Shown here: in pieces, positions 15,998 through 63,289 of the stretch | Numbering within the stretch: position 1 is the first letter of the stretch | Layout of the letters: each line of letters starts with the position of its first letter | DNA from: Stylophora pistillata | Taxonomy: Eukaryota | Assembly (NCBI RefSeq): GCF_002571385.2 | Contig: NW_019217883.1 | Span: 373,797-437,796, forward strand | DNA length: 64,000 nt | Direction: 5' to 3' | Made by a program: the position numbers and the translations under genes | The notes under the pieces: generated by a model | Databases searched by the model: none | What the model was told of the DNA's origin: nothing | What the model saw: the letters and a program-made list of their open reading frames with translations, nothing else

Positions 15998-30989
<14,992 letters not shown>

Positions 30990-31858: not shown

Positions 31859-38040
<6,182 letters not shown>

Positions 38041-44000: not shown

Positions 44001-46077
44001 GGATAAAAGAAAATCATTTGTCGACGTAATTGGTAGTTGTAAAATTTGAAATGATAACTACTCGGCTAAACTTTGTTTTCCTTGAAAACAGAACGACTCT
44101 TAAACTCTTCTCCATCCTTAACACTCGATTTAAAAATTCACACTGAATTCTAATTTCATTTTAATCGACTTCTTTAATTTTGACCAACCTATAGTTGATC
44201 CTGTTCCAATTGAAGGATTATGATCTTACTTCCAGATGTTTCACATAATAACATAGTAAAGTCCTTAAGCCCGCTGTACCGAATCGCTGTTTTTTTAACA
44301 TGTTTTAAAATCATTTCAGCCGAAACATTGTAAACAGGATGTATCTATTTCACTATAAGCTGGTTTTAAATATGATCCTGTACTATTACTTTAAGTTCAA
44401 ATCAGTTAAATGATATATCTTTCCTATTACAAGTTACGTTCAACACTTACTAAGTGAACTAAATGCGGTTGAAGCAACATACCATTGCCTGCTTTTGACT
44501 CTGTTTCGTTTTTGGTTTGTGTTTGTTGAACAGATAATTAGTTATTTCAAGTATCCCCTTGTTTTTCATTATATGGAAGTGTCCGACAGGACTGAAGCGT
44601 CCCCGATTAGACGGAAGAGTCCGAAATCGAACAGAATCATTCAAAATCTATCAGAGATGCAAGGCCNGCGGAGGGGGGAGGGCGGAGCGCCGTGCCAGAG
44701 GTACAAACCGCTTCGAGATCTGAGGACCATTTGTTATTTTGCCTTGGTTCCCATTCTGTTGTATTATTTCACTCTCAGTAAGTGAGTAACTAAATTTTCA
44801 TGTCTTGGTCTTATATTCTACTTTAACAACTTCTTTGAATTCAGTGTAAATTCAGTTTAATATTTAACTTTTTTATGACGTAATTAGGAAGGCAGACAGT
44901 ACAAAAGATTGTATTTATATTTTGGTGCTGGCTAAACCTAAGAATCCAGTGACCGTCGCAATTCAACAGATCCACGGCGTTAAAATTTAAAAAAACCTGG
45001 CCTAAATACACCTCAATTCTAAACATGAACTAGTAATTCGAAGTTAAGATTCAAGTCGATGAGAACCGATATGACCACACGCATTTAACATTACACAATT
45101 AAAACATTATAGGGTTTTAAGACTTTTAATTGGAATTTACACACGAACTGTCTCTAGAACGATCAGACAAAGTCATTTCTAGCACGTACCCCTTACCTTT
45201 TAATTATTGCAGAGACATACCTGTTATTTGTTTCCGTGAATAGCGACGTTCTGCTTGTTTGGACCAGAGTCGCCTCTTCGTAGGAAACGCAGCCTCCTCA
45301 GTCATGTCGTACTTTTACCACAAACCCGAGGAAAGTCTGGGGAGAGTATACCAAGCCTCCTCTGAACTTTGGTCTCCTTTTCAGGTTTCGCTGAGGAATT
45401 CGCCAAACAAACGTAAAATTCTAAGGAATTCCAAAGGGAAAATCATCCTTAAGATGGTTTGCTGTTCGTTTGTTTGGTGTCTAAAGAACCTTGAAAGCAC
45501 GAACGGCCTGCACAAAATGCCAGAATCAGAGCAGTGGGCACTAAAAATGGAAATTAAAAAGTAGCATAACACATAAGAGTAACATAACATAACGTTTATT
45601 CAGGAAGCTACAACCCAAATATAAAAAATGCATCCTGAAAAGGGAAAATCGTGAGGTTAGCCCTGTATAAAAACAATTTCCCTGACTAAAAACATACAAA
45701 AGATCAAATTTAATGGCTACAGATTCAATAAATATTCAATAAATACGGGAGCCCATTAGTTTGAAGTTTTTCCTGGTGGCTGAAACGGCCGTGGACTAGA
45801 ACTTAGCTAAAGACCTTCTTGTCGTCAATATTCTTCTAGACTCATGACGTAGGTTTCAGGTACAACTTCATACCTCATAATATGCATACAATTAATTGAT
45901 AAGACTGTAGACACATGCCGTACATGGAAATCTCTCCAGATTTTTTCCTAGCAAAGTAGTCGTAAAAAAAACTAAATGATATTGATCAACAAATTATTAA
46001 TTACCATTTGTTCTTCGTGTGGTTCTTTCTAGAGGTTTTGACCTTTCCGTGTTCGTGACTTTTTCATCTCGCAGCAG

Positions 46078-46100
46078 CTGTGACGTAAAACATCACGTGT
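46078..46100 (+). promoter_or_regulatory. CRE-like TGACGTAA plus E-box CACGTG about 50-70 bp upstream of the Cys-Pro gene ATG
   Basis: 'gtgacgtaaaacatcacgtg'. Confidence 0.4.
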
Positions 46101-46149
46101 TATTTCTCATTTACTCCTTCTTTCGCTCTGTTTAGCGTCGATTGCTATC

Positions 46150-47804
46150 ATGGCAGGAACTGAGGTAAGAAAGTTCTTCCCGTTTATTTAGGTCTTTTAG
46201 ATTTTATAAGGCGATTACAGTATTTCTTACAGGTGCCTGGACAGTTTTTTATTGATCACTGTGTGACACCTCTCAGGTGTAAGTTAAGATTTCAACAAAT
46301 CGAAAGATCATTGTTGTTTGTGCGATTCAGCATGGTTCTTTTGATTTAGGACAAGTCTTTCTCATTTTTTGAACGATCGACCCAAGTTCAATTCCGTGAA
46401 CTTAGGAATTACTTTCTTAGTCAAAAGCCCGCGAATATTGCAAATCAGATTTCGACGAATGATAGTTTATTTCTCGCCGGTCATCAATAAGTAAATTATA
46501 CTGACTGTTTTGCCTGCATTTCAAGGATGAATTTATCATCAAAACCGTCAACTTGCCTTTTCAAACGCTAAAAATAGCTGTTAAAATGAGAAGTGGAATC
46601 AAATCTCCTTTTGCTAGTGAGTTTAGGGCTACATTCAGCTTTACCAAAGAGCAGGGAAGTCGGAAAATTCCGGTCACGGTCAAGGTATTCGGCCACGTGA
46701 CACTCTATGTGATCGTGAACTGTGACAACAATACATTACGGAGTGCGGAGCCCAGAATATTCAAATTTCTAACTGGATCTACAAAACCTCTCTTAAAAAC
46801 CTTACCTGCCATTAAAAGGGGATCAAAGCGTTATTCCCAGTGGCAAACTATGTATGCTTGAGTTTGATAGAGGTTGCTCTTATATTTTTAAGGATTCACG
46901 GCACAAACATGGCAAACGGGAACAATGTTTAGTTTCTTTACATGAAAAAATAACAAATAAACTTATCCTTTGCTTCCTTCAGCATGATAATGAATCATTA
47001 AAGGACCACTGTCCTGCATTTAAGGAAGGCTGCCCTTATTCCAAGTTGACAGAAGATCTTTACATGGGTGAATTGAAAAAATGCCCTGAGTTCCAGAAAG
47101 GATGCCCCTTTAAAGATGCTAACAATGTCAAGGAAGTGGTTGAAGAATTGTCTAAGATGCCAGAATCAAAGCACCACACAGGAGCAGCACACAAACAGGT
47201 ACTTGGCATGCTGAAGGCTGTTCATTCTGAGTCCAAAAAGTTGGAAGAGAAGGTTGGAGAGTGTCCTGTATTCAAGACAGAGGAAGGCTGTCCTTTCAAA
47301 GAAGCCAGCAAGGAAGGGAAACCTTTGGTAGAGCCACCAGCAGCTGTGCTAGAAGATTTAACTGCCTCTGATGTCAGTAAATTGAAGGAGAAGTGTCCTG
47401 CTTTTAAAGAAGGGTGTCCATTTGCCAACGTGGATAATGACTCTCTTTTAGAAGAAATTAAGAAATGCCCTGAGTTTAAAGAAGGATGTGCCTTCAAGGA
47501 TGCCAAAACAACGGAAGAAATTTACAGTAAGCTGTCACAGATGCCAAGCAGCGACAAGGACTACCACCATAAAGAAGCTCTGATGGAGACCATGAAAGTT
47601 GTTCACAGTGTTGGCCATGAGAAAGCTGAGGAGTGTCCTGTTCTACAGAAAGATGGTTGTCCATTTAAAGCTGTTGAGAGTGAAGGAAAGCTTCTTGTGG
47701 AGCCAGCTGATTCAGTGTTGCCAGCTGGGGTGAAAAGGAAGTATCCAGCTTCTGATTCAGGTTGTCCTTTAGCCAAAGCCGGCAAAGAAGATCCGAAGAA
47801 ATAA
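46150..47804 (+). CDS. Uncharacterised 278-aa Cys-Pro repeat protein (two tandem units of about 128 aa, each with 3 x CPxF..GCPF); candidate heme or metal binder
   Basis: Exon 1 46150-46164 (ATG GCA GGA ACT GAG|gtaaga) splices in phase to exon 2 46983-47804 (tttgcttccttcag|CAT). Open frame with a diverged internal duplication, TAA TGA stop, and AATAAA at about 47867. Confidence 0.88.
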
Positions 47805-48284
47805 TGAGTGGATCTCATAATGACACTCACAAGCTGAAACATAACATGCAAAAACATTTTTAAATGAATAAATTTTTTGGTTATGATAACTAAGCTTTCA
47901 ATGAGTACTTTCATTGAAAACAGTAAGCCAAACCATTAAAGTTAACTTTACCATTCTTATCTGAGTCTTGCTGGTTATGATTTGATAACTAAACTTGAAT
48001 TGAATACAGGTTTTCAGCTATTAAAATTATAGGCCTGTGGTAAGAGGCATGAAATCAATGCTGAAGGGAGGCTGGCTCATGATAGTTGCAACCATGGAGC
48101 AAACTTGTATCTCCGAAGTTGTTATGAGAGGGCAATAGGAGCTTCAGGAAGAACAAATTTCCTCATGGAGGGGAATTGCTTTTTTCTTGAACATTTACAA
48201 CAACTTCAAAAGTCTACAAAGTCAATGTAATGAGAAAACTGGGTACTAGAATTGGTGCTCTTTCCCATGCCCTATGCACTGTTA

Positions 48285-57321: not shown

Positions 57322-60300
57322 TCAGTGGCCTGAATTCTCACAAAAGAACATTAGTTGTTCTTTCGACGTAAGTTTCCGCGGAATCTTCAGTTGATTCACA
57401 GCCGTCGGTGTGACTTTGAGAAGGAAGTCGCGAAATTTCTGGAACGTACCTGGTTGGACCAAACAAACTTTGAGTGTGTCGATACAGCCGCCATTTTCAC
57501 GACGAATGAGATAAAAGGGATTCACCTCACATAGCGCGTGGTCCAACTGAAAAGAAATTAATTGAAAGTCGTACAAAAAATGGCAACAGACTGATCGTGA
57601 GGCTGGGTTACATAAACGCGATTAGGTGTTTAAGCAGTAATCAATTAATTGTCCAGAGAAATCATCAATTCGGTCTGTGATTGGTCCAGAAAACCATCGC
57701 CACAACAATCAATCGGATGCGAAACTAAAATCAATCACGATTTGGTCACCCGTGTAAGCAGGTTACCTGTTTTTACTTCGAGTTTTCATTGGCTGATGAT
57801 GATGTCAGCCTTCTCTCTTATTGGTCTTTGAGTTTGGATTTAGTTTCTCAACATTCAGTTGAAAACTGCTTTATTTACATCGACAACGACAATATAATGA
57901 TAATGATATATAAAATTATAATGAGGTATAAAATTGTAATGATAGTGAGAACAATAACTATAATCCTAACGACGATGGTGTGAATAGACACGGGCCTTGC
58001 TAATGCATTTATCCTTGCGGTATCTTCGTCAGTAGTAAGTCCAAATTTCACAACACCAGGAAGAAACAAGAGACACAGGGTTAGATTTCATTCTTACCTT
58101 TCGAGAAAGCACCTCATTTTCTTTTGAGTCTCGAGTTGCACTAAGCTCCAAGAAAATTATATAAAATGGCTTGACACCATCAAAGTCTGCCTTGCATTTT
58201 TGGCCAATAGTTTCCAAAACGAAATCCATTTTCTTCGGGATTAATTCCAACAGAATGCTCTCTGCGCATGTGTAATCCACGAAGTTAAATTTCTCGCCTT
58301 TACCTCGGAGCACATTCGTGAGTGCTTCGTACATCATCGTCTCAGTCGTTTTCTCCGAGCGCATGTTTAATAGCTGACCTTGTCTGTACTGAAACTCCAC
58401 CACCGGGCAACTGTTGTGAAAACGGACAACTTTCACCACATCTCCGATCCTGTAACGGTACAAACCGCTGAGAGTCGTTACCACGAGTTCATACGAGCAA
58501 CCGGGTTCGAGTTCCTCACCGAACAGCGTCTGTAAATAATATGACGTGTGTTAATAGTTTACTTAATGGCCCTTATTTGGAATGTCATGCATCGCTCCCC
58601 CAGAGATAACCTTACGGTTCTTTTTGGGGATCAGGGACAGTATGTGACATCCGGTCGGCTGTGGGGATGACTTATGATAAGACTGACCTAAGTGAAGGAA
58701 ATCTGGTATAATTATTACCAGATGTAAAATGTGTTTAGTCGTACTATAGGAGAAGCACAACTACGGGCAAATTATAACAAAAGAAAATATAATCATAAGC
58801 CAGTGAGAACTCAAAGTTAAAACAGCCGGGGCAACAAACTAAAAGCGCGGGAAAACGCAGGTGATCAAATCACAATTGGTATTCGTTTGGCGTCCCATTG
58901 GCTGAGAAGATGGCCTAAGTTTTCTGGACAAATCACAGAGCAAGATTAAGAAAACCAACTAGTACCGGATCAATTTCGCCGACACTCAATCGAAATTTGG
59001 TCTAACCACTTCAAACGATCGTCTTATCTCCAGTTTTACTTATTGTGCGATACCGCAGCCTAATGTCTTGCTTTACTAGCCAGAAAAAAAAAAAAAAAAA
59101 AAAATGAAGCGGTGGCGATCTCCCGCTTCGTTTGTGTGAGGGTGTGATTGTGCTTATTCTCAAATGAAGTGTCATTTCGTGGCTTCAACATGAGAAACAA
59201 GAAAACTCTTTGAAGTACCTTTGGTTGTTGTTCGTGGGTACGCTCCAATGGTATGAATTCAAAGAACATCGAGCGAGGTGCCAGGAGATAGCAAGATTCC
59301 GTTGTTAGTGGCCATAAGTTCACTCCAATCAATCCTTCAGTGGCTCCATATATGGTAGAACACAGTGCCACACCCTTGAGATAGCGCTCCCGTAACTGCA
59401 TGGCATAAAGTTCAGAGGAACCTTAAAAAGGGAAGAAGATACAACATGTGAATTTTCTCTTTTTTCGATATGCCAAACATGCCGCAAGTCATCCTCCTAG
59501 TAGAGAGAAACAGTGCCTTACGAGTGCACCCAGCCTCCTAGCCCCGTTTATACATCCAAGTTTTTGTTTGTGCCCCAAAAAGGCTAGACATTTTCTTTCT
59601 AAACCAAGTTGTTTCTCTCTCTCACGGTGGTTTTTTTTTTTTTTTTTTTAATGTTATGCCCCACCCCCTCTGCCAAAAAGCTTTTTTAACTGAGGAGAGG
59701 GCACTGTGTGAGGGAGACTGCTACTCTGTGTTTAGTGTAAGTTTTGATGGCTCAACGATGGTCGCAATAACAAAATTTTTTAAGTAGATATCAGTCACAT
59801 GATGAAAACTGACAGCCTACAAATTCGAAACAGTAGGCAGCAGAGCATGTGACAATATTTTGACCAGAACTTACCCGACATTACCCCATGTACATATGCT
59901 AGGTGTGGCCAAATTCTCCTGGCGATTCCATCAAAACCCTTCTGAAACTCCTCTCTTAGTTCATTTGCTCGTTGTTTATCCGGCTTTAGCTTTAAAAGCT
60001 TATTTAGCTCTCTTGGAAATAAGAGGCAGACGAAGAAGAAATAATTAGTTATGATCATACAACAAAACAAAAGCAGTCGATATTCTCAAGGAACGTTTCG
60101 GTTGAATTCGTAATACTTACGTTCGAACTCCATCTGTTATTTCAAGATCAGCATTGATTTCACCTTTCTCCAAGTCTTGCACCATTAATTTCCAGTTTTT
60201 CTCAAGGAAGACGAAAACCCCGTGAATCCAGAACGCAAAGTTGCCTAGAATGGCACCCAGGTCTCTATCTCTTAGTGCAAACAACACGTGAATGTAAAGT

Positions 60301-63289
60301 CCAGCGGGTTCGGACGGGACGTCAAGGTGCACTCGGGGAGTGGACAGGGCGTGCAGCTGTAAGGAAGGGGCTAAAGTTGAAGGTCCAATGGGAATCCCTC
60401 CTTCCGAGTACCTGACTTGAGGAGCGTGGAACAGTTTAAGGGACTTCTGTAAATTATCCGCCTATAGAAATATAAATCATGTTGCAGGTTTTCTGGCAAA
60501 GAGGGATCAATCGGTAATGGACGCTCGATATGGAAGTTCAAAATACATGAATTCAATAATTTGCGTGCCGTCAGCCATGCTACTAAATTGCGTGCCCTTG
60601 GCTTATTAATTGCTCAGAAGTCGTCACATAACTCATCCAACTTAGTTATGCGGTTGTCAGCTGTAAAATTAGATTTGGAAATGAGATTTTAAATGCGAAG
60701 GTAGAGATTAAAATTTTATACATTTCTGTCTACTCCATAATCTCTTAGGACTCGCGTGGCTACCCGCACGTGCATAACCCGTCGCCTTTCGTGTCAATCT
60801 TGTGCCCCAGAACCATCTATTGCGCATGACTACTTTCTGTTGCGTTCCAAAATCGAGATTTTGGCCATGAAAGCTAACCACACGGAAAAGGATAATTTCT
60901 AAACTGATATGATAAAACTCCATGAAAGCATAGCTAATAGAGGGGACAAGTAACAAGAAAATAATACCGCAAAAAGAGGAAAGTTTTGATTTTCTTTTCA
61001 TCGTGTGGAGAAATGTTATTATCTGGAGTGATTACTTCTACTCACCTGGGGTAGAACGTTAAACAAAGTGTGATAGAGTCCCACAGAGAATCCGTACTCC
61101 ACGAATGCTCTGGAGTTGTCTCGTGTCTTGGGAATAAGACAACTTTTTCCTGTTGTCCCGGATGTTACTGCCAACATCCAAGGATCTTGATTGGTCAGTA
61201 CGTTCGTCTTTCCTTGAGCAATTTCATCTGGGGTGAAAGGAAAGTTGTAAACTCGGTTATAACGTTTGCTTTGATGATTTATGGTAGAGGCTTTTTGATA
61301 CTCAATAATGAACTCACAGAAGTAAAACATGTTCAGTATAACCCGAGAGTGTATACCACTGAAACAGGGAAGTTTGTTTTGAGTACCAGTGTTTTGATAC
61401 CCAACGTAGTGATAAGCTTTGTTTAAATAAATCTCAAGTGTTTCCTTCTTGTTATTTTATGTTTACAAAGTATTCTCCTGAGCCCACAGATGCGGAAAAC
61501 ATTCCTTAGACTGTGAAAATTAGCTAGAAGTTAGATTTGGATCTTAGTTGTAAATTCTACTTTTAGTAATAAAGTTAAGGTTCATCGAATATTTAACGAG
61601 AAAGAGACATCACGTCTTCTTGTCTATCTCTCCCTTGCCCGTCAAAGCAGTTAAGAAGCAATATAAACAATCGAAATTCTTATCTCTTTCATTCTTGCAA
61701 GAATATCTATATATCAAGTGCTGTTGTGAAAAGGTCAAAAAATTTTGGCGTAAATTGTTCGTGAAAAAGAACAGATCAACGAATGACACAAATTTTCTGT
61801 ATTGACCAGGATTACGCTGTAATTGGCTAAGGGCATGGGTCGCACTTGGCAAAGTTTGGTGTGAATGTGGTCACTTAAATGTAAAATTCTGTCATCGGGG
61901 CACATTGTGTAATGCGACCCTAACTTTTCCAGTTAGGAAAAACTTTGAAAACCGGCCAAAACATCAAAGACGCCGCAGTGCTTGGGTGGGGCAGGTAGAT
62001 TTCGGAAAACTCGGGCTAAACAATAGCTATCACAGCGGTAACTGTCAACACTTGTCAGTAAACAGCAAACGACTCGACTGGTCGCAGAACTGACCAGGCA
62101 TATGGCGCTCGAAGTAATCTTCGCTGACGTCGATTTCTCGCTCTAATCATAGCGGCAGTCAAAACAAATAAACAGGCGTTAACCCATATTTCATAGATCA
62201 TACGAAAGACAAAAAAGTGCTCGTGATTTAACTGAATAAGAAGAATAAGCATCACCGTGATCGTTATTAATAATGCTTCAACGGGACGCATTTTGTTTAA
62301 CGTTTGTTTTCCTGTTTCAGCTCACTGCTCTCTCCCCATAGCACGTCGATAAACGTGTGTCTGGTTTATCAAAGTGTCATCACTGACATTTTTTTCACCT
62401 AGTGCGACCCTTTCCGGTTGCGATTTCAAATTTTCTGTGGCTTTTTTGCCGGCAAAGTTGAAAACTTTGCCTAAGTGCGACCCATACCTAATCCGTTTTT
62501 CATGGTATAAGTTTCTTAGAACATTTTCCAGAGTTTTGAATTCTCATTTCTGTTACGGGACCAAAAAATCAGTTTGTTTGTCTCTGCTCCAACCAAAATA
62601 CATTTCTTGAATGTTTCGAATGATCATTTCTTTCTTTTCTTTTTTTGTACATAACTAGCACTAGTAGAAAGCCCCAAGCTTCACCATGTAAAATACTTCT
62701 TGCTTGTAAACGCCTTTTGTATTACACCTAGCAAGATAACGCAAATCTACTTTCCATGAACGATCACTGCTGGATAAAATCGGCTTCAAAGTCTTGCGTC
62801 CCTAGCTTGGGAGGGATCAATGACATTCATAATATTGCTAATCCTCTCGCGCAAACCCGTATACGGCATAGCTATTACAGTCGTTTCTTGCAGACTGTTC
62901 TATTATCACCAAAAATATCGTTAATCAATCTACCTACCCACAAACGCTTTGTAGTGATCATACTTGGTGATGGGATGAACATCAGTAAAATCCCGGCGGC
63001 TCGTTATTTCATTGAACTTGAATTCTCTACCATATCTAGTCTTGGAGTTTTTCTTGAGAATGTTTAACAAAAATGTTTCTTGAACTTGGGGAAAACTTTT
63101 TGTGTCTTTTTCCAGGCGTCCTCTTGCTCTAGCTCCCAAGAGATACACAAAGCGATTGATAAAGAAGTGGACCAGTAAACTCCGAGCAGAGTGAAATTTG
63201 CTCCGACGTTTTTTCCAGATCTGAGCGACAACAGAAAGTAGGAGACCACCGACAAAAATTACAACAAACAGCGAAATATACAACATCAT
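57322..63289 (-). CDS. GHDC: GH3 domain-containing protein (GHDC-like acyl-adenylate-forming fold) with N-terminal hydrophobic anchor, 7 exons
   Basis: Approximate exons 62938-63289, 61046-61227, 60120-60461, 59875-60011, 59219-59421, 58098-58529 and 57322-57547. GH3 motifs VQETFLLNILKKNSKTRYG, TSGTTGK, YGATEG, FFEFIP, YELVVTTLSGLYRYRIGDVV and C-terminal QLKIPR. Confidence 0.92.

Follow-up and report, generated by a model that had tools for sequence, protein, structure and literature searches.

A soluble coral protein made of the Cys-Pro units of heme oxygenase: a truncated duplicate with a possible role in heme handling

Introduction

Which function can be ascribed to a protein whose cysteines lie nearly all in Cys-Pro dipeptides and which carries no enzyme domain? 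This question is raised by LOC111327423, a two-exon gene in a 64,000-nucleotide stretch of the genome of the coral Stylophora pistillata (contig NW_019217883.1, positions 373,797 to 437,796 of the forward strand; hereafter the window, from whose first letter all bare positions are counted). Little is understood of the ways in which labile heme is moved and buffered in the animal cytosol, and the list of known dedicated carriers is short. A previous reading of the locus made from its letters alone (here, the sequence-only reading) had proposed a stand-alone heme chaperone or store, or else a metallothionein-like protein, without recognising a named family for it. Alignment traces the gene to the N-terminal part of the coral's own heme oxygenase, and a role of its product in the cytosolic handling of heme (or iron) is probable.

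Results

The product of LOC111327423 consists of two Cys-Pro units

The spliced product of LOC111327423 is identical to the NCBI 'uncharacterized protein LOC111327423 [Stylophora pistillata]' (278 aa, record P0001), from which the full-length protein was taken; homology searches were run with exon 2, as the five codons of exon 1 are too short to search. The protein has a mass of 30.6 kDa and a pI of 5.7, with 42 Lys and 37 Glu. Its maximal 19-residue Kyte-Doolittle hydropathy is 0.44, compared with 2.84 for the tail anchor of its heme oxygenase paralogue (see below), and thus it has neither a transmembrane segment nor a signal peptide, in agreement with the acidic, Lys-rich product free of both that had been described from the sequence. 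The count of Cys-Pro dipeptides was also right: 12 of the 13 Cys encoded by exon 2 are followed by Pro, the sole exception being the GCAF of unit 2. The contexts (CPAF, CPY, CPEF, CPF, CPVF, CPVL, and CPL) agree with the heme-regulatory motif (HRM), a Cys-Pro dipeptide with, as a rule, a hydrophobic or aromatic residue after it. Cysteine makes up 4.7% of the protein, all 13 residues being spaced as Cx6-8C, and there are 10 Phe, 5 Tyr, and 10 His.

These cysteines are organised in two diverged units, as proposed, of 124 aa each and 47% identical to one another (exon 2 self-match, E 1e-29). Unit 1 (46992..47363, + strand), delimited with a hidden Markov model (HMM) of the unit and an AlphaFold2 model, includes the pairs CPAFKEGCPY, CPEFQKGCPF, and CPVFKTEEGCPF, as well as a KHH..H loop and a long helix with the VHS sequence. 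Unit 2 (47364..47735, + strand; unit HMM) includes CPAFKEGCPF, CPEFKEGCAF, and CPVLQKDGCPF. All six Cys and the VHS His are present in both, and the fourth Cys of unit 2 precedes Ala, as in all coral unit-2 copies. The tail (47736..47801, + strand), with the sequence VKRKYPASDSGCPLAKAGKEDPKK, aligns with P0036, P0034, and unit 3 of the heme oxygenase as a remnant of the first Cys-Pro pair of a lost third unit. The first Cys of this pair is replaced by Tyr in Stylophora only, the form KRKCPA.D.GCP being kept in the Pocillopora, Orbicella, Oculina, and Desmophyllum orthologues; more distant free forms show KRKCPAFESGCPF (P0036) and KRKCPASETGCPF (P0034) at the same place.

LOC111327423 is a paralogue of the N-terminal region of heme oxygenase

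The single heme oxygenase locus of the Stylophora genome (C100:445858-448574) shares the contig of LOC111327423 and is encoded on the other strand, about 24 kb past LOC111327423 and about 8 kb beyond the end of the window, the two genes being arranged tail-to-tail. This gene (LOC111327430, 702 aa, P0260) encodes three Cys-Pro units that precede a complete heme oxygenase core; an MCPF motif at the C-terminus and a tail anchor come after the core. The core conserves the proximal (catalytic) His and the YLGDLSGGQ distal helix, and its closest relatives in the PDB are human HO-2 and HO-1. The product of LOC111327423 is 70% identical to units 1 and 2 of this enzyme over 282 aa, and 92% identical in a central tract. 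The closest longer homologues (67-73% identity) are encoded by single long exons of other corals and consist of three units followed by the start of the heme oxygenase domain (PF01126).

No match to PF01126 was detected in LOC111327423, whose frame stops after the tail, and no heme oxygenase exon was found within the 64-kb window. By these alignments, LOC111327423 is a truncated duplicate of the N-terminal units 1 and 2 of LOC111327430. The two regions are homologous, share the unit layout down to the GCAF of unit 2, and lie on the same contig; they differ in that LOC111327423 lacks unit 3, the heme oxygenase domain, the C-terminal CPF motif, and the membrane anchor, and in that it has a five-codon first exon and a conserved tail of its own. 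Because of this paralogy the gene is not an orphan. The description of the protein as stand-alone calls for a qualification, since the gene is a truncated duplicate that still exchanges sequence with the enzyme gene.

The Cys-Pro unit defines a family mostly fused to heme oxygenase

Searches with exon 2 retrieved units of heme-oxygenase-bearing proteins at E values from 1e-158 to 1e-10, and an HMM of the unit matched both units of LOC111327423 nearly end to end. This model yielded 177 distinct near-full units, and conservation was analysed over 83 non-redundant units. Their consensus is CPAFxxGCPF-x15-CPAFxxGCPFK-...-L-x3-P-..-H-..-HxxS-..-GxCPVFxxxGCPFK. Each of the six Cys is conserved at a level of at least 0.92, the Pro after Cys at 0.86-0.96, and one His at 0.89, so that the conservation of Cys and His on which the sequence-only reading depended was found. 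Over the 177 distinct units, the Cys/Pro/His pattern is kept far beyond chance. All six Cys are present in 159 of the 177 units, and each defective unit lacks one Cys, never both of a pair, which fits independently acting sites better than sites that are obligatorily joint.

The PF01126 domain directly follows the unit in 39 of the 60 long relatives scanned. Such fusions, a search for which had been suggested from the sequence, were found in corals, in Mucoromycota fungi (eight named genera), and in contigs of probable protist origin. The position of the unit directly N-terminal to PF01126 in several groups ties the module to heme or iron metabolism. Two proteins carry units in the absence of a heme oxygenase domain: P0031 of the octocoral Xenia, with three units, and P0037 of EukProt, with three units and a tail anchor. 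Fusion to heme oxygenase is thus typical of the family, but not required.

No named family could be assigned to the unit, as had been anticipated. Searches of Pfam, NCBIfam, and PDB sequences with exon 2 gave only sub-threshold noise, and a profile of the unit compared with the PDB matched only through the heme oxygenase columns of the same alignment, with no PDB chain matching the unit itself. The ESM Atlas provided no usable match. The 4Fe-4S ferredoxin model Fer4_11 was rejected, as it scored 16.9 bits against a cut-off of 26.2 and its CxxCxxCxxxCP spacing does not fit; STAND/TIR proteins such as P0130 were also discarded, their QPQFADRCPWEKL repeats not being homologous to the unit. In the papers searched, the gene identifiers are not mentioned, and no Cys-Pro extension is described for the heme oxygenases of cnidarians, fungi or diatoms.

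Further members or relatives of the family were observed along these searches. Stylophora has two more genes with Cys-Pro units at C687:15478-16521 (-) and 25741-26781 (+), which are inverted copies of each other; each has two divergent units in separate exons, with the third Cys pair degenerate, and resembles LOC110045335 of Orbicella. A weaker locus is present at C379:304389-305497. The contig L011 (Ga0099807_1097002) includes, at positions 546-2750, an uninterrupted frame of 735 codons in which three units precede the complete heme oxygenase, followed by a CPF motif and a tail anchor; no intron interrupts this frame at the place of the Stylophora intron, so that the contig probably derives from a transcript of a different coral. 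Finally, P0082 (630 aa) shows an N-terminal hydrophobic leader and more than 10 tandem pairs of the types CPAFKDGCPY, CPAFADGKCPF, and CPAFKDHKCPY, separated by His-rich linkers, an architecture from which it appears that the Cys-Pro pair alone can multiply outside the full unit.

LOC111327423 is spliced and expressed

The gene model proposed from the sequence, with two exons and a 278-aa product, was found at the same coordinates. Exon 1 (46005..46164, + strand) consists of a 5' untranslated region (UTR) and the ATG at 46150 followed by the rest of MAGTE, and was recognised from RNA contigs reading into the first 12 bases of exon 2. The start codon is in good context (A at -3, G at +4), no upstream ATG is present within 46005-46149, and the true 5' end of the gene is somewhere within this same interval. 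The intron (46165..46982, + strand) is of the GT..AG type and 818 nt long, as seen in the sequence and in loose contig ends at the junction in runs X10, X11, and X4. Exon 2 (46983..47804, + strand) includes 273 codons and the TAA stop (47802-47804), and its translation matches P0001 at 100%. The 3' UTR (47805..47981, + strand) carries an AATAAA at 47867-47872, and RNA contigs extend to 47981.

The 46164/46983 junction, for which RNA-seq had been named as the check, is present in RNA contigs from three studies, those of X10 and X11 (polyA RNA-seq) and that of X4, the last run being counted as RNA by guess. On the left side, RNA contigs ending at 46164 continue with CATGATAATGAA, the start of exon 2; on the right side, other RNA contigs precede 46981 with ATCATGGCAGGAACTG, the end of exon 1. 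RNA contig depth is high over exon 2 and low or zero over the intron. RNA contigs of X10 and X11 also show an 11-base insertion (ATAACCTTTTG) at 47855 in the 3' UTR with respect to the assembly, and several single-nucleotide polymorphisms (SNPs) were detected in RNA contigs, such as 46995 T>C and 47434 A>G; the insertion and the SNPs look like allelic variation between colonies.

Orthologues in other corals are under purifying selection

Orthologues were identified through NCBI annotation in Pocillopora damicornis (LOC113670245), Orbicella faveolata (LOC110047839), Oculina patagonica (ACROYT_G024004), and Desmophyllum pertusum (OS493_036424), all of them annotated as 'uncharacterized' or 'hypothetical'. 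These four proteins are 278-279 aa long, start with MAGTE or MAGSE, and are 82-87% identical to that of Stylophora. DNA of six free-form orthologues was obtained from metagenome contigs (L003, L004, L005, L006, L010, and L014), two of which, L003 and L005, encode proteins 99% identical to that of O. faveolata. Comparison of Stylophora with the Orbicella-type L003 and L005 and with the other corals (Nei-Gojobori) gave ratios of nonsynonymous to synonymous divergence (dN/dS) of 0.07-0.10 at a dS of around 1. In the parts specific to this paralogue, the ratio is 0.04-0.09 for the head and about 0.16 for the tail. These values point to strong purifying selection on LOC111327423 over a deep divergence. 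LOC111327423 is an expressed, selectively maintained coral gene.

Gene conversion has kept the centre of the two genes alike

Identity to the heme oxygenase gene is unevenly distributed along exon 2. Identity, dS, and regional trees delimit a gene-conversion tract at 47223..47610 (+ strand; codons ~81-210 of exon 2, approximate limits). In the centre (codons ~85-210), third-position identity is 0.85-0.95, nucleotide identity 0.87-0.97, and dS 0.32; in the flanks (codons 1-80 and 231-270), third-position identity is 0.3-0.7 and dS 1.2-1.8. Trees of the head and of the tail each split a free-form clade from an enzyme clade (support 1.00). In the tree of the centre, sequences group by species, so that the Stylophora free form joins the Stylophora enzyme (0.998), L006 joins L009 (1.00), and L004 joins L007 (0.997). 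A central protein identity of 92-96% was also found between the Pocillopora free form and P0004 and between P0021 (free form) and P0011 (enzyme form), and P0036 and P0017 are 100% identical over the first 75 of the residues compared. The longest contigs of P0021 and P0011 have equal lengths, no more than a hint that the two genes are linked. The grouping of head and tail by type of gene and of the centre by species speaks for an old duplication followed by conversion between the inverted copies, recurrent in several lineages.

The tract also left a mark on the RNA contigs, which in all four runs show a loose end at 47691 that continues as the enzyme sequence PLFSPVDSVL, a de Bruijn-graph footprint of the tract shared with the heme oxygenase gene. 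Conversion may have been selected to keep the two products matched or may be mechanical, as the data fit either.

Two contigs combine the two types of gene. L007 (OFEN01023341.1), compared with L004, has an enzyme-type head and a free-form centre and tail, and L008 (OFFA01004448.1, the source of P0002) has a free-form head, identical to that of L004 for 60 codons, which runs into unit 3 and heme oxygenase. These reciprocal chimeras are either an assembler mis-join across the converted tract or an inversion through recombination between the inverted paralogues.

Structure prediction for the single unit

AlphaFold2 modelled unit 1, from an alignment of 80 sequences, as a small helical domain (predicted local distance difference test, pLDDT, 76.5; predicted template modelling score, pTM, 0.66). 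Foldseek found nothing at E <= 0.001 with this model, and the best VIA-align hits (Z up to 5.7; spidroin N-terminal domain and bromodomains) were in the chance range for helical models. A predicted complex of unit 1 with heme and a coral heme oxygenase core (L011:1869-2528) had an interface score (interaction prediction score from aligned errors, ipSAE) of 0.00, which counts neither for nor against an interaction.

Surroundings of the gene

RNA contigs of all four runs join 45540 to 46005, and the skipped stretch (45541-46004) begins with CT and ends with AC, so that it corresponds to a GT-AG intron on the minus strand and, thus, to a divergent spliced transcript that overlaps head-to-head with exon 1 of LOC111327423. 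The contig of this transcript runs about 1.9 kb further to the left, where no long open reading frame (ORF) was seen. The promoter region common to both transcripts shows TGACGTAA and CACGTG at about 46082-46099. The neighbouring genes are unrelated to heme: a rhodopsin-family G-protein-coupled receptor encoded by a single ORF at 34436-35341 (+), and exons of a GH3-family gene at 58029-58484 and 62930-63289 (-).

Discussion

The results described above show a soluble, conserved, and expressed protein in which nothing is present but a module that, in the great majority of cases, is attached to an enzyme whose sole substrate is heme. We favour that this Cys-Pro module binds heme, by analogy with known motifs and with a probability of about one half. 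Each unit would be a folded, multi-site version of the HRMs known from HO-2 and ALAS, in which Cys thiolates, each with a Pro and an aromatic residue after it, would serve as reversible ligands of ferric heme and the conserved His would supply the second axial ligand; the thiol/disulfide state would probably influence this binding. The HRMs of HO-2 bind heme via the Cys of Cys-Pro, often with a distal His, and help to load the catalytic site (PMC8808069). The free protein could then act as a cytosolic heme buffer or carrier alongside heme oxygenase, either handing heme to the enzyme or competing with the enzyme's own N-terminal domains, and it would reach the bulk cytosol in a way that the enzyme, anchored to the endoplasmic reticulum, could not. 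Heme binding is favoured by the Pro and the aromatic residue that hardly vary behind each Cys, by the tolerance to single Cys losses, and by the CPF form of the motif, which HO-2 and the coral enzyme have in common at their C-termini.

Several points weigh against heme binding. Classical HRMs are short and lie in flexible regions, and here the motifs are within a domain predicted to be folded: the single unit is modelled with a pLDDT of 76.5 and its conservation is domain-like. The whole of exon 2, modelled from 42 close homologues, gave a poor prediction (pLDDT 51). In addition, an invariant signature of six Cys and one His is also typical of Zn or Fe-S sites, and a module fused to heme oxygenase could just as well have to do with its products (Fe2+, CO, biliverdin) or with the supply of electrons. 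Finally, mutation of the HRMs of HO-2 in human cells left heme buffering unchanged (PMC8808069).

A less likely alternative is that the unit is a metal-binding module whose six Cys and His ligate structural Zn, Fe or an Fe-S cluster; in the fusion it would accept the Fe2+ from heme cleavage or relay electrons, and the free paralogue would take up iron in solution as an acceptor or chaperone. The predicted fold of the unit and its nearly invariant Cys and His agree with this, as do the regular Cx6-8C pairs, the weak sub-threshold matches to the Fer4_11 and CCCH zinc-finger models, and the release of iron by heme oxygenase together with its need for reducing equivalents; in mammals, iron chaperones that dock on HO-1 have been described. 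However, Zn or Fe-S sites do not require the Pro that follows every Cys (0.86-0.96) or the CP-aromatic pattern, which are the signature of HRMs, the spacing fits no known zinc-finger or ferredoxin motif (Pfam scores, such as that of Fer4_11, being under the cut-offs), single Cys losses are tolerated, and no structural neighbour with a metal-binding fold was found. The paired arrangement of the cysteines would also suit a pure thiol/disulfide sensor without cofactor, in which the Cx6C pairs report oxidative stress (e.g., during bleaching) to heme oxygenase or to other partners, and a precedent exists in the two C-terminal CP cysteines of HO-2, which form a redox switch operating at -200 mV, near the cellular potential (PMC2742820). 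We regard this explanation as unlikely, as it leaves unexplained the invariant Pro, Phe, and His and the near-exclusive fusion to a heme enzyme, and as units that lost one Cys of a pair retain the other. There is very little probability that the gene is a decaying or functionless partial duplicate that is merely transcribed: it is a truncated copy and its tail pair has a C to Y change in Stylophora, but its frame is open, the two-exon structure and the MAGTE start are conserved in five genera, dN/dS is 0.07-0.10 at a dS of around 1 and low also outside the conversion tract, and spliced polyA RNA was found in several studies.

Returning to heme, a broader scenario can be offered tentatively, and with less confidence than heme binding as such: the Cys-Pro unit would be a hitherto undescribed, folded multi-site heme-binding domain that feeds or gates heme oxygenase in many eukaryotes, and the corals of the robust clade would have set two such units free as a soluble shuttle or buffer of heme acting in trans, which recurrent conversion would keep functionally matched with the enzyme. 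If so, the product of LOC111327423 would belong to a type of protein that has long been looked for in animals, the dedicated cytosolic heme chaperones. The module has been attached to a heme-degrading enzyme many times in evolution, and here it constitutes the whole protein. If the protein does bind heme, a new family of heme-binding domains with fungal, protist, and cnidarian members would be defined, and the traffic of heme and iron in symbiotic corals would become more accessible to study. As a small and soluble protein that is abundant in polyA RNA contigs and kept by strong selection in reef-building corals, the product of LOC111327423 is an easy target for recombinant work. The locus also illustrates neatly the concerted evolution of the regulatory region of an enzyme with a free-standing copy of that region. 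What is new here is the free paralogue, with its orthologues, its expression, the selection acting on it, and its gene conversion.

The comparison with metallothioneins, one of the two proposals of the sequence-only reading, does not stand up to the composition of the protein. Both are small, soluble Cys-containing proteins without a catalytic domain, but the product of LOC111327423 has only 4.7% Cys, with no CC, CxC or CxxC, is rich in Lys, Glu, Phe, and His, with many aromatics, and is predicted to be helical. A parallel is human HO-2 (Cys265-Pro, Cys282-Pro), in which Cys-Pro-Phe motifs are also attached to heme oxygenase with His nearby, and the coral enzyme too has a C-terminal MCPF motif before its anchor. 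However, HO-2 has two isolated sites in a flexible C-terminal stretch, with no detectable sequence homology to the unit, whereas in corals each predicted folded domain presents six sites and lies on the N-terminal side of the enzyme, which LOC111327423 lacks altogether. In yeast Hap1 (HRM1-6), Bach1, and the ALAS presequences, several Cys-Pro motifs make up one heme-sensing region. The motifs of these proteins are attached to domains for DNA binding or catalysis, within regions of low complexity; in LOC111327423, for which no homology to them was detected, the motifs form a conserved repeated domain that is the whole protein. In conclusion, what is new with respect to the known HRM proteins is a repeated, conserved domain of HRM-like sites released from its enzyme.
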